The position numbers were made by a program, and so were the translations under genes. Positions 14,601 through 50,616 of a DNA stretch of 64,000 nucleotides are shown here, one piece after another (position 1 is the stretch's first letter; each line of letters opens with the position of its first letter). The stretch lies in assembly GCA_000388065.2 (NCBI GenBank), contig KB932207.1, one strand, 5' to 3'. The DNA comes from Fonticula alba ATCC 38817. Taxonomy: Eukaryota > Protista > Nucleariida. The notes beneath the pieces were generated by a model. It made no database searches and was not told the DNA's origin. It saw only the letters and a program-made list of their open reading frames with translations.

Positions 14601-16982
14601 TGGGTGTCACGCACAAGTGGTGACCACACACCGGTCGGACTCCGCAGCTGGACAAAGGTGTAGACGCCGGAGTTGGTGGACGTCTCGAAGGCCGCAACGA
14701 GGCCCTCTTGCGTTGGACTGGCGCCCGGACAGGCGAAGAGACCCCGGCACTGGCCCAGGAGGGTGGACTGTGGGGACACCACACAGGTGGGCTGGCAGGT
14801 GACCTTGACCTCTGCCGCTTGGGAGGGGGTGCACACGGCGATGTGCAGGATCCCGGGGCTGGGCTGATGGATATGGGCGCCGTAGATATTTTGCGGGAGA
14901 GTGCTGCCAAACAGAGAGAGCGTCTGCTGGCAGGAAACCGTGTCGGCCGAGGAGTCCAGGGCACAGAGAAGCAGATGCCCACTGTGCGAGAGAGCCATGA
15001 GCGACTGGGCATTGTCACCGGTGGCAAGGCAGGCTCCATTCGTGCCACAGGGCTGGAGCGGACCGACAGCCAGCCGCAAAACCGGAGGGTGCGCCGCGGC
15101 AAGGGCACGGGCGTCCATGGCATGGTCCTTGCCGATGCTGATGACGCTGCCACTGTCGCTGCTGCTGTTGTTGGTGTTGGTGTTGTTGTGGACGTTCTGC
15201 CTGCTGCCACGTTCAGGAGCCGCAAGGGCCACGGTCGCTCCATTTACCGGAGTCCCCGGCGGAGTGAACACCATCTCGAAGGGATCAAGATCGTAGTCGC
15301 ACACCGCACGCCCACTGCCACGGCCATCCGGACAAGACTCCACACAGGACCCGGTCTCGGTCAGGGAAAAGCGCGGCCGGCAGCTGAGGCAGTGCCGAGG
15401 GTTGGCATGGTCGCAAATGTCGCAATTGCTCGCCTGACAGGAGGCACAGGCTGCCGAACAAATGGAGCCCCATGTCGATGTCGGTGCACGTGGATGCACA
15501 CGGGGGACAGATCATTAGCAAGGGGAGGACGGGCAGGGGATCTCGGAAAAAAAAAGAGGGCTACGGACTGGAGGTTTGGCGGTGGAAATAGTAGCCGAGT
15601 GCGCATCCGCCGCACAGCTGGCCCTTGGAGTGTGCGGGACCACGGCCCTCGGCACATCGCCAGGCGGCCGTGCGGGCAACCGTGTCGAGAAGGCACTCGA
15701 TCGTGGGATCGGGGGCCGAGACAGCCGATTGTGGGCAGAGGAACTCCTCCGGGGTCAGGTAGAAGTGGGTATCGGCCAATCGCCACACCGAGGACACGGT
15801 ATAGGCCATATCCAGCATGGCCAGCTTGGTGGGAGCCCGATCGAAGGCCACCTGGCGGATGATCGGTCGGGTGGTTTGGCTGTCGACCATTGTCATGTCG
15901 ATGCGGTACACACGGATTTGTGTGCCATGTGGCGCGGCGAAAAAGAAAAAGGGCGCGCTGGGATTCATGAAGTGCTTGTTGCCAGCGATGAAGCGTCCCC
16001 CGCTCGTGGGGAAGGATGTGGGCAGGGTCAAGTGAAGGACTTCCTGCGGAATGAGGCTCCCGTTGGTGGCGCGAAGGATCACGATCGAGCCGTTGTCCAG
16101 TTGCATCAGCACATCGAATGTCACGTCGGTCTCATAATACAGGCGCGTGGCCGTGACGGCCGCCGTGAAGCCAGGACCACCGGAGCGAGTGGTCAGCAGG
16201 GCGGTGTTGCTGGGATTGACCACGCGGTTTTTTTCCACGTAGAGGGAGTTCTTGTTGTAATGAAAGGCGGTCAGCTTGCGACCGGCCTGGGAGGCAGATC
16301 GAATGAAGGTCCTGCTCTCATTGTAAGTGAGACGGAGGGAGTCACTTTCGTAGAGGGCGTTGATCTCGGTGGTTGACACGTCTGTCGTCCAGATGGCATA
16401 GCCCAGTGGGCTTGTGGTAATTCGGGTCATGGCAGTCGTGGTGAGGCTTCCAGTTCTTGGTTGGGAAATGGCATATGCGTTGTTTTGGAGGACCGCCGCG
16501 CAGAAGGTCGTTGACGAGCGAACATTGCAGGTGAAAGGTGTCACCGGGGGGGAAACGAGGGAGTTCTGATTCGCTCGCTCGAAAGAGGCGCCCCAGCGCG
16601 GATCAACGCTCGGGACTGGCCGATAAGCGGCCAGCGAGTTGCGAGACACCAGCAGCATATCGCCGGTCGCCTTGGGATTAGTGCCGAGGACATCCTGGAA
16701 GGTCAGCCCGATCATGTCGTCCTGGTGAGCAGGAGCCAGCACGGCCGGATCCAGGGCGCGTAGGTAGAAGGCTGTGCCGATGTCGCTCTCGGAATAGGTA
16801 TACTCCCGAAGGATGGCCGAATTGGCGGCCGGCCAGCAAACATCCTTCAAGCAGGACTGTGCCCAGACGGTGGGCGATCGGAGCAGCAAGAGTGCAAGCC
16901 CGAGAAGGATGGGGAGAATAGAGGACGGACCACCGGGCGATTGCATGGAGCCAGCGTGCAATCGGCGGGGCGGACCCGGCAT
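8665..16982 (-). CDS. Receptor-like TKL Ser/Thr kinase 1 (~2,300 aa): signal peptide, FG-GAP-like motif, long furin-like Cys-rich ectodomain, one TM, non-RD kinase domain
   Basis: In-phase GT-AG exons: 16982-15569, 15450-11056, 10819-10664, 10556-10386, 10134-10083, 9933-9776, 9635-9421, 9172-9055, 8888-8665. Signal peptide ILPILLGLALLLLRSPTVWA; Ca-loop ADINRDGHLDLVL; many CxxCxxxCxxC repeats; TM VIAVPIVVLLALIVLLMVFFC. Kinase motifs GCGSQARV, VAVK, FYREVSIMW, HQDIKSRN, DFG, YASPE, SDIYAMS. The start could be the ATG at 16946 instead. Confidence 0.9.
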
Positions 16983-17052
16983 CCTTAGGCAGCGACGAAA
17001 GTCTAAAATGAGGAGGGAGTGTAGGGTGGCTTGAAGTGTGTGAGGAGGGGAA

Positions 17053-17170: not shown

Positions 17171-17480
17171 GCAAGGTGACCAGCTCATCCCAGCGAGCTG
17201 AGATGTGCCCGAAAAGCGGCGTCCTTTTTCTCCCCAGCTCCGCTGACTTCCTCCTGCCATCTCCTTCACACAGGGGTACATCCGGGGGGGGGGGGGGGGG
17301 GGGGGGCAACTAGAGGCCAATTGAACGCGATGCGGGCCACATCATGCGGGGGCTTCCTCGATGTCCCTCGCTCCGATGTTGTGTCCCGACGTCTGCACAG
17401 GTTGTTCGCTCCTTGGCGTCGGCTATTTAAGTCCGTCCCCGATTCGATCAGAGTGATCGGTTGGGGCGGGCGAGCTCATT

Positions 17481-17482
<2 letters not shown>

Positions 17483-17545
<63 letters not shown>
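17483..17545. repeat. (GT)n microsatellite
   Basis: Perfect GT run. Similar runs occur at ~27843-27901, 41133-41190 and 42563-42632 (CA), and a CT run at 18387-18433. Confidence 0.95.
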
Positions 17546-18383: not shown

Positions 18384-18438
<55 letters not shown>

Positions 18439-18690: not shown

Positions 18691-18764
18691 TGTCCGAACC
18701 AGGACTCGAACCTGGGACATTCTGTGTGTTAGACAGATATGATAACCATCTACATCATTCGGAC
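18691..18764 (-). tRNA. tRNA-Val (AAC)
   Basis: Reverse complement folds GTCCGAA/TTCGGAC acceptor stem, TCTGT-CTAACAC-ACAGA anticodon arm and CCAGG-TTCGAGT-CCTGG T arm. An oligo-T terminator follows (plus-strand A run at ~18676-18683). Confidence 0.96.
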
Positions 18765-19926
18765 TGATGGATGAGGCAGGAAAAGATGTACACATGTGTG
18801 TGCGGCCCGTGAGGCAGGAATGGCCTTCGGCGCGCGGGCCGCGACACAGGCCACCCCGAGGGCCTGCCGGCGCCCGGATTGCGGTGTGCAACTCGCCCGA
18901 AGGGCCGTGGCTGCTTGGCCGCCGATCGTGGCCTTTCCTTCCGCGGGGGTCACCATGCGCGCAAGGGACACCGAAGAGGGGGCGGGGGCGGGGGCGGGGG
19001 CGGGGGCGATGGGATGGCTGGAGATGTGTGCTTATTTTCTTTTGTGCAAACGACACCGGACAGTGGGGGAGGGCCCTTTTTTTTTTCGAGCGACGCCGCC
19101 AGTGTCCGGGCAGTGATGCGCGAGATCTGGACTGGGCAAGCGTCCCGCGGAGTGCATTCTTCTCGGCTGCCGGTCCTCGAAGAGGCGCCCGGCGGGGGGC
19201 CTCGCCCGAAATAAGGGTGCCCTGGCAGCCGGGGAGGACGTGGCTCCCCGCCGGTTGTGGCCGACGCACTTGCCTTGCGTGCTGGCAGGGGAGCGGGCCC
19301 GAGAATGCCTTCGCCATGGGTGCCCCGCCGGATGGTGGTGGTCGCCCCAGGGCAGCGGAGCGGTAGCCGAGGCCGACCGGGCGGGCAGAGGTGCCCCGGC
19401 CCGAGGGGAGGCAGGTGGCGCACGACCGTCGGCCAGCTGGCCGGGCGTGTACTTTCGGTGGGGGATGAGGGGCGCACGAGCCCGGGTGCCACGCTCCGCC
19501 GGCTGTCGGTCCTGGCCTGCTCGGCCTCCGCGTCCGCCCTGGCTGTGACCCCTCCACGCGCCAGGGTTGCTGCTGCTGCTGCTGCTCATGTCTCCAGGCG
19601 AGGGCACGCCACCTTTCCCAGCCCCTCGCCAAGGCGGGAGGACGGATGCGTCAACCCCCGGCCGATGTAGTTTCCGCTGCCCGGGCGCCCCTGGGTGAGG
19701 ATGTGCCTTGCGCCTGGGCGCCGCTCCGCGGGTTGCAGCAACTTCAGGAAGGGCACCTTCGTTGGCGGAAGCGACACCGCATTGCCCGGTCGCGGTGGAT
19801 TGTACCCTTCCTGGGCCGGCGGGTTTCGGTGTCTGATGCGCTGCCTCCCCGGGGGATACAAATCGCCGGCGGGGGCTTTTTCCTCGCTTGTCAGTGCCCT
19901 CTGTCGGCCGGCCGGCCCACGCTGGT

Positions 19927-20050
19927 ACCGAAGTGCCACGGGCGCCGGGACCGAAGTGCCACGGGCGCCGGGACCGAAGTGCCNNNNNNNNNNACCGAAG
20001 TGCCACGGGCGCCGGGACCGAAGTGCCACGGGCGCCGGGACCGAAGTGCC
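19927..20050. repeat. 23-bp tandem minisatellite (ACCGAAGTGCCACGGGCGCCGGG)n with an internal gap
   Basis: Unit starts at 19927, 19950, 19973, 19994, 20017 and 20040. The N gap at 19984-19993 lies inside the array, so the true copy number is unknown. Units are contiguous with no spacers. Confidence 0.92.
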
Positions 20051-20107
20051 TCGCGGCAAAAGGAGAGGGCAAAAATGTCGCCGCGAGTGGGGGAATTCCA
20101 TCAATCG

Positions 20108-20178
20108 GCGTCGATGGTTTAGTGGTAGAATTGCCGCCTGCCACGCGGTAGACCCGGGTTCGATTCCCGGTCGACGCA
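20108..20178 (+). tRNA. tRNA-Gly (GCC), copy 1
   Basis: GCGTCGA/TCGACGC acceptor, GCCGC-CTGCCAC-GCGGT anticodon arm, CCGGG-TTCGATT-CCCGG T arm; TTTT downstream. Confidence 0.96.
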
Positions 20179-20363
20179 ATTGGATCTCCTTTTGCACCGG
20201 GCGAGTATCCAGCCTGCGGGGCGCCTCCATTCCCATTTTTTGTCCCGGCCTCGGAGCGCCCCCCCGCAGGAGCCCAAACATGCGTGGATGATGGGTGTCT
20301 GCCCCCCCCCCTGAGTGACCAGTAGTAAAAGCCCGAAGGGGGTGCAAAATATGAATCATAGAT

Positions 20364-20436
20364 AGCCCACTGTGGGGCTCGAACCCACGACCCTGGGATT
20401 AAGAGTCCCATGCTCTACCAACTGAGCTAAACAGGC
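20364..20436 (-). tRNA. tRNA-Lys (CTT)
   Basis: Reverse complement: GCCTGTT TA GCTCAGTTGGTAGAGC A TGGGA-CTCTTAA-TCCCA GGGTC GTGGG-TTCGAGC-CCCAC AGTGGGC T. Confidence 0.94.
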
Positions 20437-23071
20437 TAATCTGCTGCATGAGGCATGCCATCGTGTATTTAACGATGCGCAGTGGCCCGAAGCGGACCGT
20501 CGCGCGCATTGCCCGGCGATCGACTTTCTCTTGCCACTGACCATGCCCCCGTGCCGACCCCCTCTGGCAGCGCCGGGGCCCAGCGCACAAGGACCCCGGG
20601 GTGGCCGCTTCGTCGTGGATCTTGCCCTGGGGGCCCCGGCCCATGCCCGTGTGGCCCTCGCCCTGCCTCCCGGATACTGGGGCCCCTGGGGCGTGACCGC
20701 CAGCCCGCCGCCAGGTGTCTCTCCGCGTCCGTCGGCTGCCCGGCCTCGGTCTTGGGTGTCTGTTTCGGCCGCGACTTGGCGAGCCGTGCCGGCTCACTCG
20801 CTGTGCCACTGGCCATGGGCATATTTCTAGAGGTGCCGGCAGTTGTGTGCCCCATGCCCAGGGGGCCCGGGTCCGGGGGTGTTCCTTGTCCCGGCGGTTG
20901 GGCTGGGCCCCTGTCGTGCGCCGCGCGAGGAGGCCGGTGTGGGGACTTTCTCGGTCTCTTCAGCTCCGGTGTCGGTGTTGGCATGGCAAGCCGGTCCGCC
21001 GGCTGGGCCCCCGCGTGGTGCGCCCGGTGCCGGCGGTCACATTTTCTGCCGTGCACCGACCCGAGGGCGGGCCTTTCGATGGGTGCTGCGTCCGTTGGCC
21101 CGGGGGTCCGGGCCGTGTATCGGAAGGTGGAGCAGGTGCGCCGGCGATGGCGACCAGCTGGCCGCGCGGGCTGGAGAATGTGCCAAGTCCGCGTTGTGTC
21201 TGCATGGTTCCCTCGGTTTGCACCACTTTCCCCCGCGCCCGGGCGAGCTCTTCCCGAATGCCGCGCCATCAAGGGCCCTTGGCGCGGCGGACCCTTCGGG
21301 TGACGCTTGGCCAGCGGCTCGGCCGACTTGCCTGTCCTTGGGTGTTGACTCGGCAGCGGTCCTTCCCTGCCAGGCCCGAGGGCCGACAGGGGGCACGGGG
21401 ACCGACGGCCGACGGTGCGCGTCGGGCGTCCGAGCCCCTGGTGCACCCGAAGCGGGGACTGCTGTGCGCCGGGAGAGGCTGCTGGCGTGTAGGTGTGTCG
21501 GGCGCACGTTAGGCCAAGGCACGAGGGTGGGCGGGAGCCAAAGCGACGCCCGGTGTGCGCGCCCCGTGAGCCCCCTTCGCCCTCGGGGGCTGGTGCCACC
21601 CCCTGCCGTCGGCCGCGGTCGAGTGGGGCATGCTGCCTGGCCGCCCGGGGCAGGAAGGCGCCCCGGTGGATGGCTTGGCTGTCGGCGGGGGTTTGGCAGG
21701 CGCGTCGGATCCATCGGCTTGGCGTGCTGCCGGGCCGCACGTTGGCCATGGCCTGCTTGGCACCAAGGGACACCTCGGCGGCAGAGACGGTCTGGTGGCG
21801 GCAGTGCAGCGGCGATGCCCCTGTGTGGCTGGGGATCAGCATGGGCGCGCGTTGCGCCTACATGGGCCCCGTGGCGCTGCGGGGCAATGGGCGGACACCT
21901 GGATCGCGGGCGGGCGACGGGTTTCACGGGCGCTCCGGTCCCGCTGCAGGCCGGTCGAGACACTCCTTGCCATGGGCCTCGCTCGAGATGAGGAGGCCGC
22001 GGGGATCAGCAAGTGCACGTCGGTTTTCGGGACGCACGGGCACTTCCCACGGAAGGGAGGGACGAGGGGGGCACATCTGGCTGGCAGCGCCCTCGGGCCG
22101 GGGGAGAGGGGCGAGGGGGCAGGAAGAAAAGGCCGCATGTCGCGGGGACTGTCGATCTCCCAGGGCGGCATGGCCGAGGCCCTTGTTTCAGGAGGAGTGC
22201 TCGGGGGAGCCCCGGTGTTTGCTGGGCCCGGAGGCGGCTAACGGATGGGGCGGGAGGGAGGTCGCGTGCCGCCATCGAGGACATGCCGCACGGGCGACGT
22301 GCTCGGGGGCCTGTTCCGGAGGCTTGGCGGCGGCCACCAACGGGAGCCCCTGCCGATGGATGACGCATTCCTGTGCACTGGAATGTCATACCGGCCTCTG
22401 ATCCCGTGGGCTCCAGACTCACCCGTGACGTGGGCATCTCAAATATCGGCTCCATCCGACGGGGCGTGGGCGTTCCCATCGGGGGGCTGGGCGCAGGGGG
22501 CGCGGCGGGCGCGGCGGGCGCGAGTCACACCCTGTGAGAGTCGCCGAAGGAAGGTCTCGGTCGCCGCGCACTTTGGCGGTTGCCCAGTCGGGGGCCGGCC
22601 CCGGCGGCGGCGGCTACACCGCAAGATGGGCATGCCAACTTCGGACGGAGGCGCGGGGCGTGCCGGGGGCCGGAGGATGCGTGTGTGTCTGTGTATGTGT
22701 TGCCTTGGTGTTGGGCCGCAGGAAATGGACCGGGGAGCCGGGGGTGCTTGGCGGCTGCCGGGCTCGGGCATGCGGCCCCGCGCGCCATGCCCGGGGCGCG
22801 CGCGAACACCCCACACCGACAACGCTGCTCCGGGGGCTTCGCCGGCGGGCCGGGCCGAAATCTGTCCGGGGTGAAAAAAAGGGGGGAGGAAGATTGGGGG
22901 GAAGTAGAAAAAAAAAAGGCAGGACTATGGTCCGTGAAGCGGCTTGGCCATCTGTGCAACAGCCTCGCCTTCTTCTCTCCTCGTGTGCCTGTTTTTCCCC
23001 TTTCCCCCGCCTTCCCCTGCCTTCCTGGGTCTCTGTCTTCTCCTTTCCATTTCCCCTGTCTCCCCTCGACC

Positions 23072-24964
23072 ATGCGTGGTGGAGGTCGATCTGGTGGCGA
23101 TGATGGCATGATCAGCGGGGCGCGCTTCGAGTCGAACTCGTATTCCGGGTCCTCGTCCCATCACTTTGACTCCGGTGGCACCAACTACTCCGGGAGCAGT
23201 AGCAGTGCCAGTTGCTCCTGCTGCGCGGTTTCCCCGGTCAGCGCTGCGTACTGTTGCCTGGTGCGAAGATCGTCGTACGTATGACCCGGTGTCGAGGGTG
23301 TCTTTTGGCTGTGTTTGTGTGCATCTGTGTGCATCTGTGTGCATCTGTGTGCATCTGTGTGCATCCGTGTGCATCTGTGTGCATATGTGTACATCTGTCT
23401 TCCTGTGTACATATGTGTACATATGTGTTCCTGCATATCTCCTGTGCGCGGGCGGGTGGGTTTGGGAACACCCCGCACCTCCCTTTTCCTTTCCCCCGGC
23501 ACCGCTGGCCCGCCACTGACCGAGGGCTCTTTCACCTGTCGGGGCGTTCCTGCCCGGGTGCGTGCCATGCACCCGGGCGCATGGCCCTCGCTCGGCTCAA
23601 CGCACGCTTCTGCCACGCACACACACACACACACATACACCGGCGGACACACATGCACGCACGCCGACAGGACCCTGCCCCGATCGGCGCTGGTGCCGCT
23701 GGTGGTCTCCATCTCCGGCTGCTGGTGGGGCTTGCTGCTGTCGTTTGTGGCGGTTCTGGGGTGTGTCATTGCCCTGCCGCTGTACACGTCGCGATCGTGG
23801 TCCCTCCCGCCGGCGGGGACATTCAAAATCGAAGTGAACCCCCGGTTTTACAACGGGGTGACGCACCGGTCCGGCCCGGATGTCGAGATGTACTTCACGC
23901 CGGCGGCCGAGGGGTCGCCCACGCGCGTCAGCACACTGACCGGGGACATGGCCACCGAACTGCAGAGCCCCCTGGCCCTGTACTACCGCGCGGTGGAGGT
24001 CCACGTGCCGGCCGGCGGGCAGGTTGTTTCGATTTTGTCCAGCGAGGCGTCCTGCCCGCTGGACTACCTCATCATCCAGGGGACCTACAACTTCGAGGAC
24101 TGGCAGGAGGGCGAGTGGATCTCCTACGAGTATGAGGGCACCTTGGAGCCGGGGAAGCCGCTGGTGCACACGCTGACGGCCACCCGGTCGGGGTACTACT
24201 TCTTCGTGGTGTTCAATGACTCGATGGGGTCCTGCCCCCGGGCGCCGGTCTTCATGCAGCTGTCGGCGGATTTGCCGGCGTACCGGCTGTCTCCGAGCCG
24301 GCAGATGGCCCTCGGCCAGCTGGTCCCGGTGTCGGACGAGCAGCCGGGCCTGGCGTCGATCATCGTCCGGAGCATGGCCGAGGTGAGGTATTACAATGCG
24401 CAGGTGGCCTACTCCCGGCGTCCGGGGGCTTTGGATTTGTTGCTCGGCCTGGCCATCGGCCTGCCGCTGGGGCTGACGGCTGTCATTGTGGTGGTCGGCC
24501 TGGTGGTGCACTGGGTGAGGGCCCACCGGAGCCGGGTCTCGCGACGCCGGCAGAACCCGGGCGACCACGAGCTGGGTGCCGTGCTGGGGATCGGCTACCT
24601 GGAGGGCCTGTACCCGGTGTCCACGCAGCAGGGCTCCCCCTCGCCGGTGGGTCCGGCGGCGCAGGCGAAGATGCATCCGGCCGGCGGGGCGCCCGGCGCG
24701 CCGGACGAGCAGGACATGGAGTCGCCTGACTCGCCGATCGGGGTCTTTTCGTGGGAATCCCACGGCGAGGCCCATGGCGCGGCGCCCGACCGCCCGGCCG
24801 GGGAGGATCCGCCCGGCCCGGGGCATGGCGTGCCCCCGGCGGGGACGATGCCGGCCGGCTGGGCAGCCGGCGATCTGTCCCTGGGGCAGCAAATGGACGA
24901 CCCGCCGCCGCCGTACTCGCCAGAGCCGCCGCCTTCCTCGGGTGGCGACTGGTCCAAGTACTGA
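23072..24964 (+). CDS. APD1-4-like two-TM protein, paralog 1 (~498 aa), RING-less, C-terminal PPPPY...WSKY
   Basis: Exon 1 23072-23274, phase-2 intron (GTACGT...ACAG), exon 2 23671-24964. Gly/Ser-rich N-terminus with a Cys cluster (CSCC...YCC); TM1 CWWGLLLSFVAVLGCVIALPLY; domain SWSLPPAGTFKIEVNPRF...YLIIQGTYNFEDW...SGYYFFVVFN...VAYSRRP; TM2 LLLGLAIGLPLGLTAVIVVVGLVV; tail DPPPPYSPE...DWSKY*. The APD assignment is recalled motif similarity, not a search result. Confidence 0.85.
23316..23430. repeat. 10-bp TGCA-core satellite (TGTGCATCTG)n inside the paralog 1 intron
   Basis: About six tandem units, then degenerate TGTACATA variants. Confidence 0.85.
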
Positions 24965-25836
24965 AGCGCGAGTGGCACCTGTACTGACGGTGGATTGTGT
25001 TTCTTGCGCGTGTGTGTGCGCGCGCGCGCCTTCCAAGTGGGGATGGCGCGTGTGCGCGGTGCCGTTGGTGTGGCTGGTCATGCTGGGGCAGTGGTGTACG
25101 GCGGGGAGATGTGGGATGCCCTCGCTCTCCCTCTGCCTTGCTTGCACCCCCCCCCCCTCTCCCTCTGGTGGGGCTGTGAGGCGACGGGGGGCCCCGTGTC
25201 CATGTGGAGGTCGGGGGTGTGGGTGTTGCTGTTTGACCGACGGCCGGCGACAGTATCCGACTCAAGGGGGGGGGGGAGCCCTGCTGGTGGCCGGGGAGGG
25301 ACGCGTCGCCGGTCGCCGCACCAGGGTTCCTCTAGGGCGAGGAGGGCTCTCCTCCGGGGGAGGGGCGAGAAGAAGTGTGTGCGTGTGTGTGTTTGATCCG
25401 CCGCGACTGCGCACGGACCCGAGAGCCGCATGGGGCCGGGGCTCAATTGGAAGGGCCCTGCGGCGACTCGTGGGGCGACTTGTGGCAACGGGGAGTCACT
25501 CAGGGTGCCAAGTGCTGGGGCAGGGAGGAGGAAAGAAGCCGCGGGATTTTCCGGCACGAGGTGCTGACGCGCGCTTGTGTGGGCGTGCAGCCCCGTGTGC
25601 GCGCGAGTGTCTGTATGTGTCTATGTGTGTCCATGCGTGTTCATGTGTGCGTATGTGTTCATATGTGTCTCTCTCTCTCTCTCTCTCTGTTTCTGTGTGG
25701 AGTTCACCGGGTGTGCCTGCTTCAGGTCGCCTCGCACTCTGCCCCCTCCCCCGGATGAAGGGTGAGCGCCTGTGCCCTGCAAGCGAGGCAGGGAAAAGGC
25801 ACATATTCCCGTGGTGGAGCCGGGCTCCTCAAGAAA

Positions 25837-25908
25837 GGGGGCTTAGCTCAGTGGTAGAGCACTCGACTCCAGATCGAGCGGTCAGTGGTTCGATCCCTCT
25901 AGTCCCCA
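25837..25908 (+). tRNA. tRNA-Trp (CCA)
   Basis: GGGGGCT/AGTCCCC acceptor, CTCGA-CTCCAGA-TCGAG anticodon arm, TTCGATC T loop (one T-T mismatch in the T stem); TTTT downstream. Confidence 0.93.
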
Positions 25909-26020: not shown

Positions 26021-26102
26021 ATCACCGTGTCCGAGTGGTTAAGGAGTCCGATTAGAAATCGGATGGGCTCTGCCCGCGTAGGTTCAAATCCTGCCGGTGA
26101 TG
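26021..26102 (+). tRNA. tRNA-Ser (AGA)
   Basis: ATCACCG/CGGTGAT acceptor, G73, TCCGA-TTAGAAA-TCGGA anticodon arm, long variable arm GGGC-TCT-GCCC, TTCAAAT T loop; TTTT downstream. Confidence 0.95.
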
Positions 26103-27044: not shown

Positions 27045-27117
27045 TCCCATATAGTCTAGGTGGTTAGGATACGTGGCTCTCACCCACGAGACCCGGGTTC
27101 GAGTCCCGGTATGGGAA
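27045..27117 (+). tRNA. tRNA-Glu (CTC)
   Basis: TCCCATA/TATGGGA acceptor, CGTGG-CTCTCAC-CCACG anticodon arm, CCGGG-TTCGAGT-CCCGG T arm; TTTTT downstream. Confidence 0.96.
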
Positions 27118-27679: not shown

Positions 27680-27750
27680 GCGTCGATGGTTTAGTGGTAG
27701 AATTGCCGCCTGCCACGCGGTAGACCCGGGTTCGATTCCCGGTCGACGCA
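27680..27750 (+). tRNA. tRNA-Gly (GCC), copy 2
   Basis: Identical to 20108-20178; TTTT downstream. Confidence 0.96.
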
Positions 27751-28448: not shown

Positions 28449-28522
28449 GGCCCCATAGCTCAGTTGGTTAGAGCGTCGTGCTAATAACGCGAAGGTCGTC
28501 AGTTCGATCCTGGCTGGGGCCA
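28449..28522 (+). tRNA. tRNA-Ile (AAT), copy 1
   Basis: GGCCCCA/TGGGGCC acceptor, TCGTG-CTAATAA-CGCGA anticodon arm, GTCAG-TTCGATC-CTGGC T arm; TTTT downstream. Confidence 0.96.
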
Positions 28523-38532: not shown

Positions 38533-38606
38533 GGCCCCATAGCTCAGTTGGTTAGAGCGTCGTGCTAATAACGCGAAGGTCGTCAGTTCGATCCTGGCTG
38601 GGGCCA
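38533..38606 (+). tRNA. tRNA-Ile (AAT), copy 3
   Basis: Identical to copies 1 and 2; TTTTT downstream. Confidence 0.96.
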
Positions 38607-39322
38607 GATTCTTTTTGGGCCGGCGCGCGTTGGTCGCGCACTTGCCGACGGATCAGTGGCTCTTTGGAATGTCGGGGACGGTGGCATCCGGTGGCACGTG
38701 CGCACATCGGCCCCAGTTGCCAGGCGTGTGCGAGTCATCCTCGGGCCGGGGGGGGGGGGGGGGGGGGGAGAGCGCGAGCGCGCGCCGCCCTGACACCAGC
38801 CGCAATCCCCGGCAGCGGGCCCGGTCCTTGATCCCTCTCGCGGGCCCTGTGTGCGACGTGGTGGGAACGCGGGGCCCGCCAACTCCGGGGCCAGGCGCCG
38901 GGGCAAGGCCGGCGGTGCGAAAGCACGCCGGGCCTAGGCCGCGCATGGGACTTGCCCCTTTGGATGGGAGCCGGCCCGGACACATGCGCCGGGGCGGGGG
39001 GCCGGCCGGCGGCCGGCGCCTTTCCCTCGGCAATTTCGCTCCCCGGCCTTCCGGCCCCCGGAGGCGCTCCACAGGAGCCGATTCGCGTGGCGCGATCGCC
39101 GGCGGAACAAAAGGCACCAGGCCGGGGCGCGGTTTGGCCGTGGTCGCCCGAGCAAAAAGGCTCCACGATCACTGCCGTTTGTTTTTTTTTTTGCGTTTCG
39201 GATCCGTCCTTTCCCTCCGCCGCTCCCCCTGCCTTCGTCCCCTCCGCCTGTCGTCTTTGGCTGTCGCCCCCTCCCCCACACGCACACCTACTCCCCCCCC
39301 TCCCCAGCCTACCCTTTGAACC

Positions 39323-41090
39323 ATGCGGGGTGGACGCCGCTCCGGTGGCGGCGGCATGAGAAGCAGCTCGCGCTCTCGAAGCCGATCATACTCCCGGTCC
39401 TCCTCGCGACGGCGCTATCGGTCGAGCAGCAGCACCTACTACTCGTCCGGATCCAGCGCCGACTGCGATTGCAGCTGCTGCGGCGGGCTTTTCTGCCGGG
39501 CCATCTACTGTTGCGGGCCCCCGAAGAATTCGTGCGCGGCCGTCGGGCAGCCATCTGCCTCCTGCTTCTTTGACTGCCTTCCCCAGGTCCCGCCCCCCCT
39601 CCCCGCCGGTGTGTCTGCATTGCCGACTGACCATGGCCATTCCCCCCCCCCCCCCCGCCCCGCGCCTGCCCATGCCGCGCCGCGTGCGGATGCCCCTTTG
39701 GCGCAGGCCGCTGCCGCGGATTGTCGTCGCCCATCGGATGATCTGCTCGTGGTTTTGCTGGTGGGGCTTCATCCTGTCCTTCGTGGCCATGCTGGCCTGC
39801 GTGTCCTTCGTGCCGCTGTACACATCGCGCTCGTGGTCCCTCCCGCCGGCCGGGACCTTCACCATCAAGGTGAATCCCCACTTCTTCGACGGGGTGACCC
39901 CCCTGTCGGGGTCGGCGGTGCAGGCGTACTTCCTGCCGGCGGCGGATGGCCCGCCGGAGCGGGTCAGCCAGCTGACCGGCGACATGGTCACCGAGGTGGA
40001 ACCCCCCGGCGGGGGGTTCTATCGAGCGATGGAGGTCTACCTGCCGGCCGGGGCGCGGGTGACTTCGATCCTGGCCGGGCAGGTGTCCTGCCCGTTGGAT
40101 TATCTCATCATCCGGGGGAGCACCAACTTCGACGATTGGGCCTATGGCGATTGGGTGCCACTGGAGTGGGAGGGCAAGCTGTGGCCCGGGCAGGAGCCCT
40201 TGACCGAGTGGCTGCCGGTCAGCCGGTCGGACCACTACTTCTTCGTGGTGTACAACTCGCTGTCCGGGCCCTGCGGCGCGGGGCCGCTTCACTTGCAGCT
40301 GTCGACGGAGGCCCCGGCGCACCGGCTGCCTCCCGCTCGGCGGGTGGCCCTGGGCCAGAGGGCGGCCGTGTCGAATGCCGACCCGGGCATGGGGACGATC
40401 ATCTTCCACACCTCCAGCTCGCTGGAGTACCATGACGCGCGGGTGAGCTACTCCCGGCGGCCGGGGGCCCTGGACCTGGTGCTGGGGCTGAGCATCGGCC
40501 TGCCGTATGGGCTGGCGGTGGTGGTGGCCCTGGTCAGCTGGCTGGTGATGCGCGTGAGCATCGCCCGGGATCCGGACCTGCTGAAGAGCACGAACCGGCG
40601 GCTGCCGGTGTTCGACGAGATCCGGGAGATCAGCGGCCCGATGCGGCCGAGCAACAGCGCGGCCGAGGAGCTGCCCACGTCGGAGGAGCTGTTTGCCATG
40701 TCCGCCGACTTGGAGTCCCAGGCTCGGGGCGCCGCCTCGAAGCCGGTGGCCGGCTCGAGGCCCGCCAGGGCGGTGCGCTTCGCCGACGAGGACCCCGGGC
40801 CGTATGCCTCGAAGGAGATGTCCCTCATCTCACCGGGTGCTTCGTCGGTGAGCTTCCAGGCCGGCGACGATGGCGCGGACGATGGGGAGGGCGGCATCAT
40901 GCTCGTGCCTCTGACCGAGAGCCTGCCCCCCGGTCTGCCGTCTTCCGGTGGGCCGGGCGGCGGGGGGCCGGCCGGGGCCGAAGTGTCCCCGGACCGGTCG
41001 GTGCCCGACATGCCGATGTCGTCGCCGCCGCCGCCGTACTCGGCCGAGTCGTCGCCCTCCTCGGCGGATGACGGCTGGTCCAAGTACTAA
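39323..41090 (+). CDS. APD1-4-like two-TM protein, paralog 3 (~530 aa), RING-less, RS-rich N-terminus, C-terminal PPPPY...WSKY
   Basis: Exon 1 39323-39531 (MRGGRRSGGGGMRSSSRSRSRS...CDCSCC...YCC), phase-2 intron at the homologous position (GTGCGC...GCAG), exon 2 39707-41090. Motifs CWWGFILSFVAMLACVSFVPLYTSRSWSLPPAGTFTIKVNPHF, YLIIRG, HYFFVVYN, YSRRPG; tail SPPPPYSAE...GWSKY*. An alternative in-frame acceptor at ~39586 is possible. Confidence 0.85.
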
Positions 41091-41852: not shown

Positions 41853-41926
41853 GGCCGCGTAGCTCAATTGGATAGAGCACCTGACTACGGATCAGGAGGT
41901 TGTGTGTTCGAGCCGCATCGTGGTCA
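41853..41926 (+). tRNA. tRNA-Arg (ACG)
   Basis: GGCCGCG/CGTGGTC acceptor, CCTGA-CTACGGA-TCAGG anticodon arm, GTGTG-TTCGAGC-CGCAT T arm; TTTTTT downstream. Confidence 0.96.
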
Positions 41927-42558
41927 CTCTTCTTTTTTCTTGCACCCCGCTGGACGGCCTGTTTCCATGTGAGTGCACAGGGGCCCGGGCGTCGACGCGC
42001 AGGATGCGAGGCGTGCTTGTGAGAGGTGGCGCGCTCCGCCGGGGCCCTTGCTGGCAGGCTGGCGTTCGCTGGAGGGAGGGAGGGCAGGGACCGGGCAGGG
42101 GGCGGGGCCAGACAAAAACCATTATTGTTGTTTTTTTTTTCCATTTTCAAGTGGTGTTGTCATTATCGCCCAGCCGCTTGGGGCCGAAAGGGGGGGCGGG
42201 ATGACGGCGGGTTTCAGCACGGCGAGCGTGCCAAGTCTTAACTGAGTGGAGCATGTCCGTCAGAATGCGGGCTATTGTGTTGGTCACTCCGGGGGCTAAC
42301 CCGAAGGGAGCCCCGGGCGGCATTGGCGCGCATCCGGGTGCAGAGGAGCCCCCCGGCGGCGCCGGGGATTCGGCGCCTGCGGCCGGGTTGGCGTGGAGCT
42401 CCCCTGTCGGAGGAGGGGGGGAGTGGCGCCCTGTGCGCGGCCCCCGGCTGGTGGTGGCCGAAGGGCCGGGCCCAGGCGCGTCCACCCCGGGGGAGCTGCC
42501 CTTGTCCAATGTGCTGGGCGGCGCGGTGGCTTTCCGTCGGCCGCGTGCGTGTGGTTTG

Positions 42559-42635
<77 letters not shown>

Positions 42636-42882: not shown

Positions 42883-45800
42883 CTAAGGCAGGATCTCGCC
42901 CATCTCCATGGATGTGTTGCTCATGCCCGGGCCGGCGCTGGAGCCGGCCTTGGCGCCGGTGGGCTTGCGCATGACCAGCACCACGACGACGGCCACGATG
43001 ATGATGGCCAGCAGGGGCAGGCCTACCCCGAGGCCGATGGCCAGGGCGGTCTTGTTGCGGCCGGAGGACGGGACATCGCTGCTGCTGTTGCTGCTGTTGC
43101 TGCTGTTGCTGCTGTTGCTGCTGTTGCTGCTGTTGCTGCTGCTGCCATTGCTGCCATTGCTGCTACTGCTGCTGCTGCCATTGCTGCTGTTGCTGCTAGA
43201 GCTGCCACCTGGCGCACTGTCACTCGTGGAGGTGCTACTGTCGTCATCCGGAAGCGGAGGGGTGCACTCGGCCGAGGTGGGCCCGGTGCATGCAGCACAC
43301 TTGGGATGGCAGGGGGCGCAGGCATCGGCGCCCGGGAGGCGATACGAGCCGGCGGGACAGGCATCCAGGCAGCCGGCGCCGGGGACGAGAATCGGCCGGG
43401 CCGGCTTGCAGGCGGTGCACTGGCCGGCCGCGGGGCCGGAGCACTCGGCACAGGTACCATCACAAGCCAGGCAGGTGCCGCCCTGCGCCGGGAAGGAGCC
43501 CGGGTTGCAGGCTTCGAGGCAGCCGACGCCGGGCTGGAGCAGGCGCCCGGGAGCGCAGGCAATGCAGGCGCCCGGGTCATAGGCGTCGGAGCACGTGCTG
43601 CAGGTGGCATGGCAGGGGAGGCAGTTGCGGCCGACGGCCGAGGGGACCATGTTGCTGGGGCAGCTGCTGGCGCATGTGCCATCCGTGACCGAGAGGTAGC
43701 CGGTGCCCAGGCAGGCAGTGCAGTGGAGGGGCTCGGGGCCGACGCACTCGGCACAGCCGTCGGCACAGGGCCGGCAGCCGGCCTCGCCGGTCGGGCTGTA
43801 GGAGCCGGCCGGGCAGGCGTCCAGGCACTGGCCCAGGGCGAGGAACATGGCGTGGCGGCAGCTGGAGCAGTGGGTGGCGGCCGGGCCGAAGCAGCTGGCG
43901 CAATGTTGGGCACAGGGCTGGCAGGCGCCGGCTTCGGGGAAGGTGCCGAAGGGGCAGCTGGTCAGGCAGCTGCCCTGGTGGGCGAGGGTGCCATGCTCAC
44001 AGGTGTCGCACGCGAGGGGGCCGCTGCACAGCCGGCAGCCGGCCGGGCATGGGACACACGCGTGACCCTGGGTCGGGTCGCGGAAGAACCCGGTGTGCGG
44101 GCAGTCCCAGGTGCAGCGGCCGTTGACCAGCTGGACCGGGTCGGTGGCCGGGCAGGAGAGGCACACCTCCGGCCGGGCCGGGTCGCAAGTGGCACAGCCC
44201 GCGCCGCAGACGCCGCAAAGGCCGGCCTCGATGTTGGGATAGTAGCCCGGGGGGCACATGTCCGGCAGGACGCACATGGAGTAGGGAAGCAACAGGTAGC
44301 CGGGCTGGCAGCGCAGGCACATGGTGGCATCCTGGTTGAGGCATGTGGCACAGTTGGCGATGTTGCAGGGGCAGGCGCCGGGGCCGCCGGGGCAGGGGGG
44401 CGGCTGGCAGGCCAGATCCGCCCCGGGGGTGAGGATATCGGTGGGCAGGAAGCACCGGAGGCACTGGGCGGACTGGGTCCCGGTGCACTCGGCACACAGG
44501 GGATAGCAGGCGTCGCAGACGCCGGGGCTGGCCCCCGGGCGGGGGAAGCTGCCTTGAGGGCAGTTGGCCACGCAGATGCCGTTCGACAGGAAGTAGCCCT
44601 CCTGGCAGGAGAGGCACTGGCCGTGGGGGTCCTGCTGGCAGGTGGCACAGTGGTCCGGGCAGGCCCGGCATGTGCGGCTGGTCGAGTCGTAGATGGCATT
44701 GGCCGGGCAGGCGGTGCAGTGGGTCGAGGCGCCGGGGGCGCAGTGCAGGCAGTCGGTGCCGGCGCAGGCGACGCACTGGCCGGTGGCGGGGTCGAACCCG
44801 CTGCCCGGCGAGCAGGAGGTTTCCTCGCACAGGCCGGTCAGCTGGTTGACCGAGTAGCCGGGGATGCAGGCGTGGCAGTCGCCGGGGCCGGAGCACGAGT
44901 CGCACCGAGTGCTGCAGGGCTGGCAGCGGCCGGTGGTCTCGTCGAGCCAGAGCCCCGGAGCGCAGGCCGTGCAGCGGCCGGGCACCCCGGTGCAGGCATC
45001 GCACCCGGCCGCGCAGGCCACGCAGCCCCGGCCATCGGAGGTGCGGTTGTAGCCGGCCGGGCAGCCGGCCACACAGGCCTGCCCGTGGTCCAGGTCCAGC
45101 AGCCCGGCCGGGCAGGTGGCACACCGGCCGGGGCGCTGCACCGAGCAGGTGCCGCACGAGTCGTCGCACTCGCCGCACGTGCGCGGGTCCACCTCGCCGC
45201 TGGCCGCCTCGTCATAGAGCGGCCGCCGGCCCGCGGGGCAGGCGCACTCGGTGGCCGTGGCCAGCAGGCCCGCCGGGCAGGCGCAGTCCGGGCCGTCTTG
45301 CACCTGCACGGCATGCGCAATGCAGGCACAGGCATTGCCGGCCACATCGAAGAGGGTGTTGGCGCCGGGGCACACGCAGGAGAAGTCCTCCTGGCTGAAG
45401 GCAGTCCCGGGTGGGCATTGTGGGGCCGTGGTGTCCGGGTGGGCGTAGACCCTGACGCGCGGCCCGGCGGCGGTGTCCTCGGTCAGGACCACGTCCATCA
45501 GGCCGTCATTGTTGAAGTCCACGATCTGGATGACGGGACCGGGCGAGGCGGCGGCCTGCCCCGCGGCCAGGGCGCTGCCCGGCATGACCACCACCCGGCG
45601 GAAGGAGATGGCCTGGCGGTCGGCCGCCAGGGTGTCGGCCAGGTAGAACACCACCCGGCCGGTGGCCCGGTCCACCAGGACTAGGTCCTCCTGCCCGTCA
45701 CGGTTGAGGTCCATGACGGCCAGCTCGGATTCCGGGCTGACGGCCAGGTGCTCGATGACCGCCAGCGGGCAGCCGGAGTCCCGCCGGCCGGAGAGGTTGC

Positions 45801-48800
45801 CCTCGAGGAAGGGGTCGGCCAGCAGGCCGGCCGGGGTGGCGAAGGGCGACGCGCCGTAGGCCTCCTCGAAGTCCCACAGGCTCTGGTCCGCGAGGCAGTC
45901 GAAGGGCTGGGCCACGATGCCGGCCGGGGCGCCGTCCGCCCGGACGAAGACCGCATGGGCCAGGGTGTCGGTCGCCTGGCGGTAGAAGAGGGCCTGGTGC
46001 AGGGGCACGTCGTCGCCCGGGGGCTGGAAGAACAGGAATTCCGGCTCCTGGTAGTAGCTGTGGATGAAGAGCACGGCCGGGCGCTCGCCGGCGGTGCCGG
46101 CCAGGGCCGGATAGAGGCTAGTGGCCGATGGCAGGGCCAGCACCAGGCACTCGCCCCACTGGTAGTCGACCCGAGGCACGCTGAGCCGGGGCCCGAAGGA
46201 GGGGAGGGTGATGAGCAGGGTGGCGATGGAGTAGGGCAGGTCCCAGTAGCCGGCCATCCAGGTGGGCAGCAGGAGGAGGTGCTCGGGCGGGGCGTCCGGG
46301 TCGGCGCCCGGGGCCCGGCGCAGGAGCGAGGGGATGCGCGGGTCGCGCTGGCCGTGGAGTTGCACCGGGGCGAAGGCCAGCTCGGTGGCCGGGTGCGGCA
46401 GGGGGAACATCAGCACCGACAGCGGGTCGCGGTGGGCACTTTCCGTTGGCTGGACCATGCCCGGGGCGATGACGAGCGACATGAGGGTGGCGACAACCGG
46501 CAGATCGGCGTCCAGGTCGGCCGGGCGGCGGACATACCCAAAGCCGTAGTGGGGCAGGAGGCGCAGATCGGTGTCGATGCGCGAGAGGCCGACACTGCCG
46601 GTGGAGAAGGGGGCCATGCTGAGCGCCAGGCCGGAGGCCTGCGACTCGCGCGGGGCAAGGGTCTCCCGGGTTTGGAGCCCGGCCAGGAAGGGCGGCGCAA
46701 TCGGGCGCAGAAGCTCGGCCAGGCTGGTGACCGGGGGGAAGTCCGTCGGGTCGGAGCTGGGGTATTGGCTGGCGGCGGGCCCGCCGGGGGGGGAGGCCGA
46801 TCGCATGGGGCCGGCGGCCGGGGACCGGGCGAAGAGGGTGGCGAAGCTGGAGAAGCCGGCGCGCGAAGGGGGGCGCGGCTGCGGCCGGTGGTGGCCGGCC
46901 GCCCGGGGAGACTGCGCGCCCATGGCGGCAAGCCCCCGGATGCCGGCATCCCAAGCAAGGAAGTCCTCGAGGACTTGGGGGAAGTTCACCTGGCGGACCT
47001 CGGTGGGCCGGCCATCGACGGCGGCCGGGCTGACCGGGATCAGGGTCAGGGCGTCGGCTTCCGGGCCGAAGTGCCCCAGGAGGCTGGGGGTGGCCGTGGC
47101 CACGGGCCAGGTCGTGGGCTGGCCTTCGAACACCAGGTGGGCCGGCCGGGCGTGCATGAGGCCGAGCGGCCGGAAGCCGGCCCACGATGCCTGGGGCATG
47201 ATCCGGGCCCAGGGCAGGAAGGCGGTGGGCGACGGGGCGAGGCATTGGCCCTTGGCCACCGGGGCATCCGGGTCCGGGCAGGCGGCAATGCAAGCGGTGC
47301 CGTCCTCGGCCAGGAGGAAGCCGGTGTGGCAGGCGAGACACCGGCCATCCAGGCACCGGCGGCAGTGGGGCAGGCTGCAGGGCGGGGTGCAGTCTGCGCC
47401 ATTAACAATGTCGAGTCAGTGGACCGGGGGCGGGGAAACAGGGGAAAGGCGGCGGGAGGACCATACCCTCCATGGTGTCCGGGTCACACAGGGCACACGG
47501 GACCTCGGGGGTGGCCACGCCGGAGAGGCAGACCGCCAGGTCGCCGGCCACCAGGGCAGTCGGCCGGGGGACGCAGCCGGAGTCGTCGGCCGTGCTGCAG
47601 GTGGTGGCGGACCAGGCGGGCCGCGGGGTGACGCAGGTGCCGAGGGTGCCGGCGCCGCAGCCATTGTGCGGGCCGGCCTCGGTGAAGAAGACCACCTTGC
47701 CGGTGTTCAGGCGGACGAGGGCCATCTCCGGCCGGCCGTCGGCGTCGAGGTCCAGGGGGACCAAGCGGATTTGGTCGGCAGGCGCGCCGGCGAAGGGCTG
47801 CATGTCCTCCGGGCGGCGAGGCACCACGGGCTGCACATCGAGGCGCAGGGCGCCGGAGGGGCTGATCTTGAGCACGGCGGCATAGGCCCACGAGCCGTCC
47901 CACAGGAAGAGCTGGACATGGTCATGGCGGGCGGTGTGCGGCACGATGGCCGCATGGAGGACCGGGGGCGAGGTGCCCGGAGCGTAGCCCAGATCGGCGG
48001 CCGTCAGCAGGGGCACCATGGTGTCCATGCGCGGGGTGCCGGCCGTCCGGGCGGTGAGGCTCGAGCGCCAGAAGAAGAGCAGCCCCGGCAGCCCCGGGGC
48101 ATTGCCCTCGGCGGAGATGAGCAGCGGCGGGGGCGCGAGCCCGGCCGGGTCGGCGGGCAGCGAGTGTGGCTGGCCGCAGGGGGCCAGGTCGCCGGCCGGG
48201 GTTTCCAGCGACAGGAAGGCCGTGCGGGAGGAGCTGCTGGCCATGTCCTCGGCCAGGAGGCCGGTCCAGTGGTACTGGCACAGGACATCGGCCGGCTGGG
48301 CCGAGGTGGCCACCAGCCACCGGTCCAGGCCCGGGTGGTTGTCCACCGGGTGCCAGGTGCCGGCGCGGAAATGGCGGTTGGGCGGCACCAGGCGCCGGGT
48401 GCCGAGCATGGGCAGGGCCGCGGCAATGCGCCGGCCCGGGGCCGGCCGGGCAAAGGCCAGGGCGTGACCATTGAGCGGGGTCATGTACATGGCATGGCAC
48501 AGCCGGGCCTCGGGGCTACCGCTGGCGGCCATGCATTCGACGGTGGTCCCGCCGGCATGCGGCACGAGGAGGGGCGCATCGCCATCCCGGCGAAGGAGGA
48601 GGGTGCTCAGGGCGTCGGCCCCGGTGGCGGTGGCATTGAAGTGGCCGCCGCCTGGCGCCGGGGTGGCATACGCCATCCAGGAGGTGGAGGCGAAGCCCAT
48701 GTGCAGGGCCTCGGCCTTGATCGGAGAGGCCGGGCTGAGGTCCGTCTGGTAGAGGTGCCCGAAGGCGCACAAATCGTGGAAGGCATAGCCCATGTTGAGG

Positions 48801-50616
48801 CCGACATCGAAGCTGACCACGGCCATGCGCTCGAACTGCGCGGTGGCCACCACCTCCGAGGCTTGGAAGTACAGCGGCAGGGTGGGGTCATCCTCCACAC
48901 GGACGCGCGTGGTCACGGGCGAGGCGGGCATGCAGCTGCCGTCCAGCAGGAAGGTGCCCGTGCGGCAGGTGATGCAATCGGTGGCGGTGGGACCGCTGCA
49001 TGCGGCGCAGCTGCTGTGACAGGCGAGGCACTTGTTGTCTGGGCGCCAGGGGCATGATGGGGCGGGGGGGGGGGGGGGGAATGGGTCAATACCGGCAGGG
49101 GGAGCGGTCAAGGGCTGGCCCAATGAGCAGGGGCCGGGCGCCGCGCACCGTCACCGAGGAAGAAGCCCGCGAGGCAGGCCTCGCACGGGAAGTAGGTGTT
49201 GAGGAGCTGGCGATGGGCCAGGGCGCAGGTGCAGGCCGGATGGACATGCGGGCCGCCCTGGTGAATGCACTGGGCCTTGGGGCCGCAGAGGCACGTGGGC
49301 GCGGCGCTGTGCAGCGAGTACAGGCGGATGGCGCTCGGGTCGCTGTCATGGGCGAGGGCGATGTCCAGGTGGCCATCACCATCATAGTCGCCGCTGGCCA
49401 GGCCGACCCACCGGCCGGAAGGGGCATCCGGCACCAGGGCAAAGTAATCAATGGCATTGAGGGTCATCGGCGAGGCGGGGGCCTCGGCGGCGGCGTCGCG
49501 CGGCCCGGTCAGCACCAGGACGCGACGACCCCCGGCGATGATGAGGTCGTGGTGGTCCGGGGAGGTGACGCGCGCGGCGGTGGCCTTGAACAGCTCGCCG
49601 GTCCAGGTGCCGGGCGGGCTGCCGCGGTAGAAGTCCGCCAGGTCGATGACGACCGGCTGGGCGAACTGGTTGCCGGACAGGAGGAAGAAGAGGGCCGGGG
49701 CATTGGCGGACCCGAGCCCGGGGAGGACCACAATGTCCGAGGCATTGCCATCGCCATCGAAGTCGCCGACCACCATGCCGCCAGGCAGGAAGCCCGGTGG
49801 CAGGACGGCCAGGATGCGTTCCTGGCAGAAGCTGGCGCCCAGGAAGTCCGACAGCAGGGTCAGGCAGTACCCCTGACCGGGGTGGTCTTCGTGCTGGCTG
49901 GCGATGAGGGCCTCGGCGTGGCCGTCGGCATCGATGTCCACGGCGATGGCCCCGCGGATGTTCTTCAGTTGGGGGAAGGTGTCGGCTTTGGAGTAGTCGT
50001 GCTCCGGGTCGGGGCCAAGGACCTGCACAGCGATGTAGGTAGGGTGGCCGGCGAAGAACTTCACCAGGGCCCAGACGGCCGGGGCGTCCTGGCCATGGGG
50101 GAAGGCCGACACGACGACCGACGACAGGGTCGAGGCCAGGGAGGACCCGACGGCGAAGAGGCCATTGCCGCGGAGGAGGACCGGCGGGCTTTGGGCGAGG
50201 AAGAGATCCGCGAGCTGCCCGGCCAGCGGGTTGTACAGGGTGCTGGTGGGCGCGAGTGGGGCCCGGGGGAAGGGGCTGGTCGTGAGGCAGGACACGCTGC
50301 CGGGGCCGGCGTGGATGAAGCTGATCGGGGCCCCGGGGCTCGGCCGGGCCGTGTAGTGGGTCTCATAGAAGGACAGGTCGGCCAGGCCGTCGCGCGTGCC
50401 GGGCAGCAGGGTGTCCTGGCTGAAGAAGTCGCAAAAGTGGATGTCCCGGTTGAGATCGATGGTCGGGTTGTCCGGGCCGGGGATCGTGTGGACCCGGATG
50501 TATTCCAGGTGCGAGGGGGTGGGCTGGAGCCCGGCCTCGGCGAGCGGCGCGGCCGCCAGCAGCAGGATGCCCAGCACCAGGGCCAGCCACGGGAGCCGGC
50601 CGGTGGGCGGGATCAT
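42883..50616 (-). CDS. Kinase-less receptor-like surface protein (~2,516 aa): signal peptide, FG-GAP/VCBS-like modules alternating with Cys linkers, long furin-like stalk, Ser/Asn linker, one TM, ~30-aa tail
   Basis: In-phase exons 50616-49149, 49038-47467, 47393-42883. Signal peptide LPWLALVLGILLLAAAPLAEA. Ca-loop motifs VDIDADG, GDFDGDG, GDYDGDGHLD, DLDADGRPE, DLNRDGQED, DFNNDGLMD. TM ALAIGLGVGLPLLAIIIVAVVVVLVM, then RKPTG...MEMGEILP*. Confidence 0.88.
43080..43200 (-). repeat. Coding (AGC/AAC)n microsatellite encoding a Ser/Asn-rich juxtamembrane linker
   Basis: Plus-strand GCTGCTGTT repeats translate on the minus strand as SSSSNSSNGSSSSSSNGSNGSSSNSSNSSNSSNSSNSSNSSS. Confidence 0.9.

Follow-up and report, generated by a model that had tools for sequence, protein, structure and literature searches.

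Clusters of tRNA genes interleaved with fast-evolving multigene families are known from the human extended major histocompatibility complex (MHC) region at 6p22 and from the long arm of zebrafish chromosome 4. Here we describe a similar arrangement in Fonticula alba ATCC 38817, where 11 tRNA genes stand between genes for Cys-rich receptors, receptor kinases and small companion proteins (APD-like proteins). The stretch that was analyzed, referred to throughout as the window, is the final 64 kb of the 2.16-Mb contig C7 (G000:C7:2093035-2157034; GenBank KB932207.1) in a genome of 31.3 Mb with a G+C content of about 70%. As in the human and zebrafish regions, many identical tRNA copies occur in mixed clusters among tandemly duplicated receptor-type families in a distinct compartment, and segmental duplication, with co-amplification of the tRNA genes, best accounts for the arrangement; we consider this the probable origin of the Fonticula layout. 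Unlike those two cases, the organism is a nucleariid-related amoeba (Holomycota) with a compact 31-Mb genome, the partner genes encode Cys-rich receptor kinases and APD-like proteins found in Fonticula only, and a tRNA cluster recurs every gene or two, with no large blocks.

Genes for tRNA (tDNAs) are also known as chromatin barriers and insulators, as is the case for the tRNA-Thr gene at HMR in S. cerevisiae, the tRNA genes that flank centromeres in S. pombe, and human tDNA insulators. The Fonticula tRNA genes resemble these in being RNA polymerase III (Pol III) genes with intact internal promoters that lie between neighbors transcribed by RNA polymerase II (Pol II), including divergent and convergent pairs; they differ in that several gaps hold multiple tRNA genes and in that paralogous gene pairs elsewhere in the genome have no tRNA gene. 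In addition, tRNA genes are hotspots for rearrangement and retroelement integration, with yeast Ty and Dictyostelium TRE and DGLT-A as examples. The Fonticula genes likewise lie in unstable, repeat-rich DNA, and near-identical repeats adjoin some of the tRNA-Lys copies, but no retroelement or long terminal repeat (LTR) was identified between the genes of the window, where only microsatellites, a poly-G run and minisatellites were found. Among protists, Entamoeba carries tandem tRNA array units and trypanosomatids carry tRNA clusters at strand switches. Fonticula shares with them tRNA genes that are strongly clustered and placed relative to Pol II transcription units; unlike them, it has neither short tRNA-only tandem arrays nor polycistronic units, and protein-coding paralogues lie inside its repeating units. 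We found no paper on the layout of nuclear tRNA genes in Fonticula.

tRNA genes among receptor genes and the signature of duplication

Searches of the 64-kb window with ARAGORN and with the Rfam model RF00005 returned identical sets of 11 tRNA genes at 18,691-41,927, with RF00005 scores of 54.7-66.9 bits against a gathering score of 29. The genes are as follows.

18691-18764, minus strand: tRNA-Val(AAC), with 28 identical genome copies
20108-20178, plus strand: tRNA-Gly(GCC) copy 1, identical to the copy at 27680
20363-20437, minus strand: tRNA-Lys(CTT), with 40 genome copies
25837-25908, plus strand: tRNA-Trp(CCA)
26021-26103, plus strand: tRNA-Ser(AGA)
27045-27118, plus strand: tRNA-Glu(CTC)
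27680-27750, plus strand: tRNA-Gly(GCC) copy 2, a direct repeat of copy 1
28449-28522, plus strand: tRNA-Ile(AAT) copy 1, 1228 nucleotides (nt) upstream of the conserved part of APD-like 2
32143-32218, plus strand: tRNA-Ile(AAT) copy 2, in the gap where the 3' ends of APD-like 2 and kinase 2 converge
38532-38607, plus strand: tRNA-Ile(AAT) copy 3, in the spacer from which kinase 2 and APD-like 3 diverge, 1171 nt upstream of the conserved part of the latter
41853-41927, plus strand: tRNA-Arg(ACG), about 0.96 kb past the stop of the kinase-less receptor and in opposite orientation to it

All of these genes have eukaryote-type anticodons. Each contains a B-box-like T-loop (GGTTCGA, AGTTCGA, GGTTCAA or TGTTCGA), and a run of at least four T residues was read directly within about 5-15 nt 3' of each gene; they are predicted to be ordinary, functional Pol III genes. 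Two other readings were rejected. Homology among the tRNA copies ends 3-25 nt beyond the tRNA, with no body or tail common to the copies outside it, which excludes short interspersed elements (SINEs) derived from tRNA, and the cluster contains no tRNA-Cys, which excludes a local tRNA supply for the Cys-rich genes.

The order given in a preliminary description of this DNA was found to be correct: kinase 1; Val, Gly, Lys; APD-like 1; Trp, Ser, Glu, Gly, Ile; APD-like 2; Ile; kinase 2; Ile; APD-like 3; Arg; kinase-less receptor. Each of the five intergenic gaps thus contains one or more tRNA genes, and both programs agreed with that description that positions 1-18.6 kb and 42-64 kb contain none. 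The next gaps outward, before kinase 1 and past 50.6 kb, also have no tRNA gene.

An RF00005 scan of the genome, in which 63 of about 658 candidates were scored, gave a rough count of about 650 tRNA candidates in 31.3 Mb. At this average about 0.5 tRNA genes are expected in 23 kb, compared with the 11 seen. Given the local number, the occupation of every gap is not significant (P about 0.3), since 11 tRNAs placed at random in the 15.5 kb of non-coding DNA of the region occupied all five gaps 32% of the time. The preliminary description had named a tRNA density high enough to make such interleaving expected as one result that would refute its reading. This turned out to be partly the case: by rough estimate, about one gap in three is occupied in receptor-rich DNA, and at that occupancy a run of five gaps would be expected about once per genome.

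Clustering of tRNA genes is the rule in the Fonticula alba genome. Thirty 3-kb loci centered on tRNA-Lys hold 74 tRNA genes, and loose clusters comparable to or larger than that of the window occur at C15:59-74 kb (58984-74131; 15 kb with at least 17 tRNA genes, a higher density than in the window) and at C8:1759-1783 kb (at least 8). For the four tRNA species that were fully mapped, the genome copies number 40 (Lys-CTT), 34 (Arg-ACG), 28 (Val-AAC) and 32 (Asp-GTC), nearly all of them 100% identical; the orientation and proximity tests below refer to these species. Near-total identity of 28-40 copies per species implies strong purifying selection or gene conversion, and the copy numbers imply several hundred nuclear tRNA genes in the 31-Mb genome.

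The association of tRNA genes with receptor genes extends well beyond the window. Outside it, 24 of 131 tRNA genes lay no more than 5 kb from a receptor match, compared with 4.8 expected (P=8e-11), and the same test by cluster gave 17 of 92 compared with 3.4 expected (P=4e-8). For a housekeeping control of 67 WD40 loci, none of the 131 tRNA genes lay within 10 kb, compared with 5.4 expected. Moreover, when the comparison was confined to the first 400 kb of contigs, the enrichment near receptors was still 2-3 fold (P about 0.002). The wider association is therefore real. Both partners concentrate near contig ends: the first 100 kb of contigs contain 21% of the tRNA genes and 28% of the receptor matches, compared with 3% of the WD40 genes. 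Telomere repeats were searched for at the contig ends, and none were found at the ends of C7 or C17; the label subtelomeric was dropped for this reason, and the window is termed contig-end.

The copies also carry a direct-repeat signature. Genome-wide, pairs of the same tRNA species 3-30 kb apart were direct in 22 cases and inverted in 4 (P=2.7e-4), compared with 25 direct and 31 inverted for pairs of different species at these distances. Tight clusters (less than 3 kb), by contrast, mix species: only 8% of their pairs were of the same species (25% expected), and orientation within these clusters was random. Within the window, all three Ile copies lie on the plus strand, as do both Gly copies; each set thus consists of direct repeats. 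Similarly, a receptor array on C10 contains seven Val copies, all on the minus strand; tandem receptors on C13 have three Lys copies in between, each 1.4-3.3 kb 3' of a receptor 3' region; and a receptor at C11:183.9-191.4 kb has a Lys copy at either side.

Units that combine a tRNA gene with a protein gene were found to be conserved. The spacing between Ile copies 1 and 3 is 10,083 nt, and matching points of APD-like 2 and APD-like 3 are spaced 10,026-10,029 nt, so that the two Ile genes precede the conserved parts of their APD-like genes by nearly the same distance. At the other end of the cluster, the closest paralogue of the kinase-less receptor (on C11, 48% identical) also has a tRNA-Arg gene about 1 kb past its stop and in opposite orientation, and at both loci a (CA)n tract lies between the receptor stop and the tRNA gene. 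In the phylogenetic tree of the APD-like genes, APD-like 1 and 2 are sisters (support 86/95). A young duplicate, an example of a tRNA gene copied as a passenger, was seen elsewhere, at C7:500 kb and C4:1011 kb, where 2.3 kb at 99.8% identity carries a Lys gene; the Asp gene lies 2.14 kb from Lys in both copies, and homology ends 715 nt past the tRNA. These two loci (L041, C7:500286-503359; L045, C4:1010411-1013484) are in inverted orientation relative to each other, and a check of the open frames of the 99.8% repeat for transposon content gave no Pfam matches. Another repeat, of 569 nt at 98% identity, adjoins tRNA clusters at L021 (C10:53948-57022) and L028 (C4:1832567-1835641) and is possibly a solo LTR.

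Proposed co-amplification and its alternatives

The association with receptor genes, the direct-repeat signature and the conserved tRNA-gene units are matters of observation; what they suggest is that segmental duplication in a contig-end compartment amplified tRNA genes together with receptor arrays, a reading that we regard as probable. According to this model, the tRNA genes of the window would be one of many loose, mixed tRNA clusters in the nuclear genome. Such clusters would concentrate in the contig-end compartment, together with a large Fonticula-specific family of Cys-rich receptors and receptor kinases and small companion families such as the APD-like proteins, and the compartment would grow through round after round of segmental duplication, mostly in tandem, of multi-kilobase units. 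A tRNA gene within such a unit would be copied along with it, after which selection or gene conversion would hold the tRNA copies identical while their surroundings diverged. After many rounds, tRNA genes would come to stand between paralogous membrane-protein genes. The tRNA genes would then be passengers, and we infer that the layout can be explained without a boundary function.

Several observations weigh against this reading. The association rests on four mapped tRNA species and on a receptor list in which 125 of 871 candidates were scored. Part of the enrichment is co-location at the level of the compartment, because tRNA genes and receptor matches both concentrate in the first 100 kb of contigs, and contig ends may themselves be assembly breaks instead of chromosome ends. 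The dense C15 cluster has no receptor match among the matches listed. Alignment within the window is limited to the tRNAs and the coding parts (about 71-72% identity); homology of whole units with their spacers was not found, the tRNA-flank homology reaching about 25 nt at most. None of the three receptors of the window is a close paralogue of another, their heads giving no cross-match, and the tree of the APD-like genes is only partly resolved: of the three in the window, only APD-like 1 and 2 pair (branches of 0.66-0.95 changes per site). Because its receptors are not closely related, the window is a mosaic of old units and not a simple tandem array. Finally, passenger status would be compatible with an additional boundary role.

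The duplications in the window are old. Between the spacers that separate tRNA-Ile from APD-like 2 and from APD-like 3, one collinear 22-nt match was the only one found, and a search for a decayed tRNA-Ile at the expected position upstream of APD-like 1 gave nothing above shuffled sequence. Because the flanks can no longer be aligned, co-duplication within the window rests on spacing and synteny. Among the matches listed, the kinase-less receptor has its best relatives on C11, C67 and C13.

The tRNA genes could instead drive the expansion. Identical direct-repeat copies of 72-76 nt, which could recombine, or replication forks stalled at heavily transcribed Pol III genes could give rise to unequal crossing-over or break-induced duplication, seeding copies of receptor and APD-like genes; in yeasts, tRNA genes have been linked to fork pausing and to rearrangement breakpoints. 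The direct bias of 22 to 4 for same-species copies would fit such exchanges, as would the Ile copies that bracket APD-like 2 and kinase 2 and the Lys copies that bracket the C11 receptor. However, tandem duplication of any unit that contains a tRNA gene yields direct repeats equally well. Moreover, the three Ile copies are separated by unrelated segments (APD-like 2 in one, kinase 2 in the other), unlike the product of a single unequal exchange at Ile, and the homology of the recent duplicate does not end at the tRNA. We therefore consider it unlikely that the tRNA genes are the engine of the process. The preliminary description had proposed that they might seed the duplication of surface-protein loci; its link between tRNA genes and receptor-locus duplication is supported by the genome-wide association, the direct-repeat orientation and the Ile-APD and receptor-Arg units, with the tRNA genes more probably carried along than its cause.

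That description had also proposed that the tRNA genes act as chromatin barriers through TFIIIC and Pol III, so that each receptor or APD-like gene would be regulated separately, perhaps as in variant expression. Selection would then retain the tRNA genes for this role. In S. cerevisiae, S. pombe and human cells, tDNAs have established barrier activity. In the window, the divergent region that separates kinase 2 from APD-like 3 has a single tRNA gene at its middle, as do two convergent regions, one separating APD-like 2 from kinase 2 and the other APD-like 3 from the kinase-less receptor, and the enrichment of tRNA genes beside receptor genes and their absence near WD40 genes would be in keeping with such a role. 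On the other hand, paralogous kinase/APD-like pairs on C17 and C5 have no intervening tRNA gene, two gaps of the window hold 3 and 5 tRNA genes where one would suffice while the next gaps outward hold none, and the duplication signature accounts for the layout without barrier function. The barrier idea is weakened by these observations, though not refuted, and we judge it to be quite improbable as the explanation of the layout. A combined role, in which receptor cassettes would be gained or lost by recombination between identical direct-repeat tDNAs and each cassette would be expressed independently behind Pol III/TFIIIC boundaries formed by these tDNAs, seems more doubtful still; if true, it would be a tRNA-based protist counterpart of variant surface-gene systems.

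Least probable of all is pure coincidence, that is, an ordinary tRNA cluster that fell by chance among membrane-protein genes, the two being otherwise unlinked: random placement readily fills the gaps, and no tRNA gene lies within 14-20 kb at two of the four APD-like loci outside the window, but the five-fold genome-wide enrichment near receptors with the opposite result for WD40 genes, the persistence of the association within the contig-end compartment, and the conserved Ile-APD and receptor-Arg units all speak against it.

Protein genes, repeats and assembly gaps

The protein genes between the tRNA genes were supported by GC periodicity at third codon positions, by Pfam and by RNA contigs (those of one study), and their bounds were set in this analysis.

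8668-16982, minus strand: receptor kinase 1, with signal peptide, head, Cys-rich furin-like repeats, transmembrane segment and split kinase domain
22930-24988, plus strand: APD-like 1 (H696_04663), supported by a spliced RNA contig and GC periodicity; coding sequence 23072-24964
29604-30908, plus strand: APD-like 2, main open frame (first exon unmapped), supported by GC periodicity
32412-37591, minus strand: receptor kinase 2, with Cys-rich furin-like/GF_recep_IV repeats, transmembrane segment and kinase
39360-41090, plus strand: APD-like 3, main open frame, supported by GC periodicity
42886-50616, minus strand: kinase-less receptor, with FG-GAP-like head motifs and Cys-rich repeats

Furin-like Cys-rich repeats are present in all three receptors. 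Kinase matches in the window are confined to kinases 1 and 2, where Pfam Pkinase was found at 9157-9669 with HQD and DFG and at 32735-33133 with HRD and DFG, respectively. The kinase-less receptor consists of three open frames that overlap in different phases (42886-51102), and its joins, near 47405-47415 and 49111-49150, may represent short introns or errors in the sequence. The three APD-like genes are 51-54% identical to one another, and no Pfam family was found for them. APD-like 1 is expressed and spliced; its transcript covers 22930-23274 and 23671-24988 around a GT..AG intron at 23275-23670, and its product matches H696_04663 of F. alba at 100%. The five gaps show no coding periodicity, and no RNA contigs were found in the gap DNA at 20.5-26.5 kb, which is weak evidence since contigs only were available. 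Three further parts of the window (1-8000, 51000-55500 and 58000-64000) are G+C-rich without clear codon periodicity at the threshold used, and they either are gene-poor or hold genes with weak codon bias.

The window contains assembly gaps. One, at 10192-10276, lies in the region of kinase 1. Another, at 19984-19993, lies inside a non-coding 23-nt minisatellite (19904-20073) whose units continue at both sides. The gap at 36464-36473 interrupts a Cys-rich coding repeat of 135 nt in kinase 2 and is flanked by two 73-nt stretches that are 99% identical; across it, the Cys-rich frame shifts by one. When the duplicated flank and the gap (83 nt) were cut, kinase 2 became a single open frame of 1003 amino acids; a spacing of one repeat period at the gap restored the frame equally. 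Kinase 2 is thus one gene with an uncertain number of repeats, and the layout is unaffected by the gaps at 19984-19993 and 36464-36473.

Several simple repeats were noted in the window. Between APD-like 2 and tRNA-Ile copy 2, a run of about 60 G residues (31144-31205) is followed by a 300-nt array of 8-nt units like TGTGCACC (31301-31614), and more G-rich runs occur at 32605-32658, 33122-33197 and 38743-38792. The tRNA-bearing gaps also contain long microsatellites of the (GT)n, (CT)n and (CA)n types, at 17479-17545, 18388-18435 and 42558-42633.

Elsewhere in the genome, a receptor kinase and an APD-like gene are neighbors at C17:334175-341849, C5:398364-407757 and C1:4688455-4694650. The recurrence of this pair at several unlinked loci points to an old unit of two genes. 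A kinase piece at about 396.8 kb on C5, where six tRNA genes follow the APD-like gene, shares 76% identity with that of kinase 2.

Implications for the Fonticula genome

Each component of this arrangement is known from other genomes: tRNA clusters occur among duplicated multigene families, and tRNA genes are known as possible barriers and as hotspots of rearrangement. The Fonticula case is of moderate interest as genome architecture and of low interest as mechanism, and a new mechanism is not demonstrated. The analysis divides the proposal of the preliminary description into two concrete and separable questions, namely whether the tRNA genes are passengers or drivers of duplication, and whether or not they exert a boundary effect.

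Taken together, these data indicate that the genome of a close amoeboid relative of the fungi has at least two compartments: a core with housekeeping genes and few tRNA genes nearby, and a contig-end compartment in which a lineage-specific receptor repertoire expands jointly with several hundred tRNA genes. Co-amplification would provide a simple route to the roughly 30-40 identical copies per tRNA species, and it would mark the receptor arrays as a fast-evolving part of the genome.

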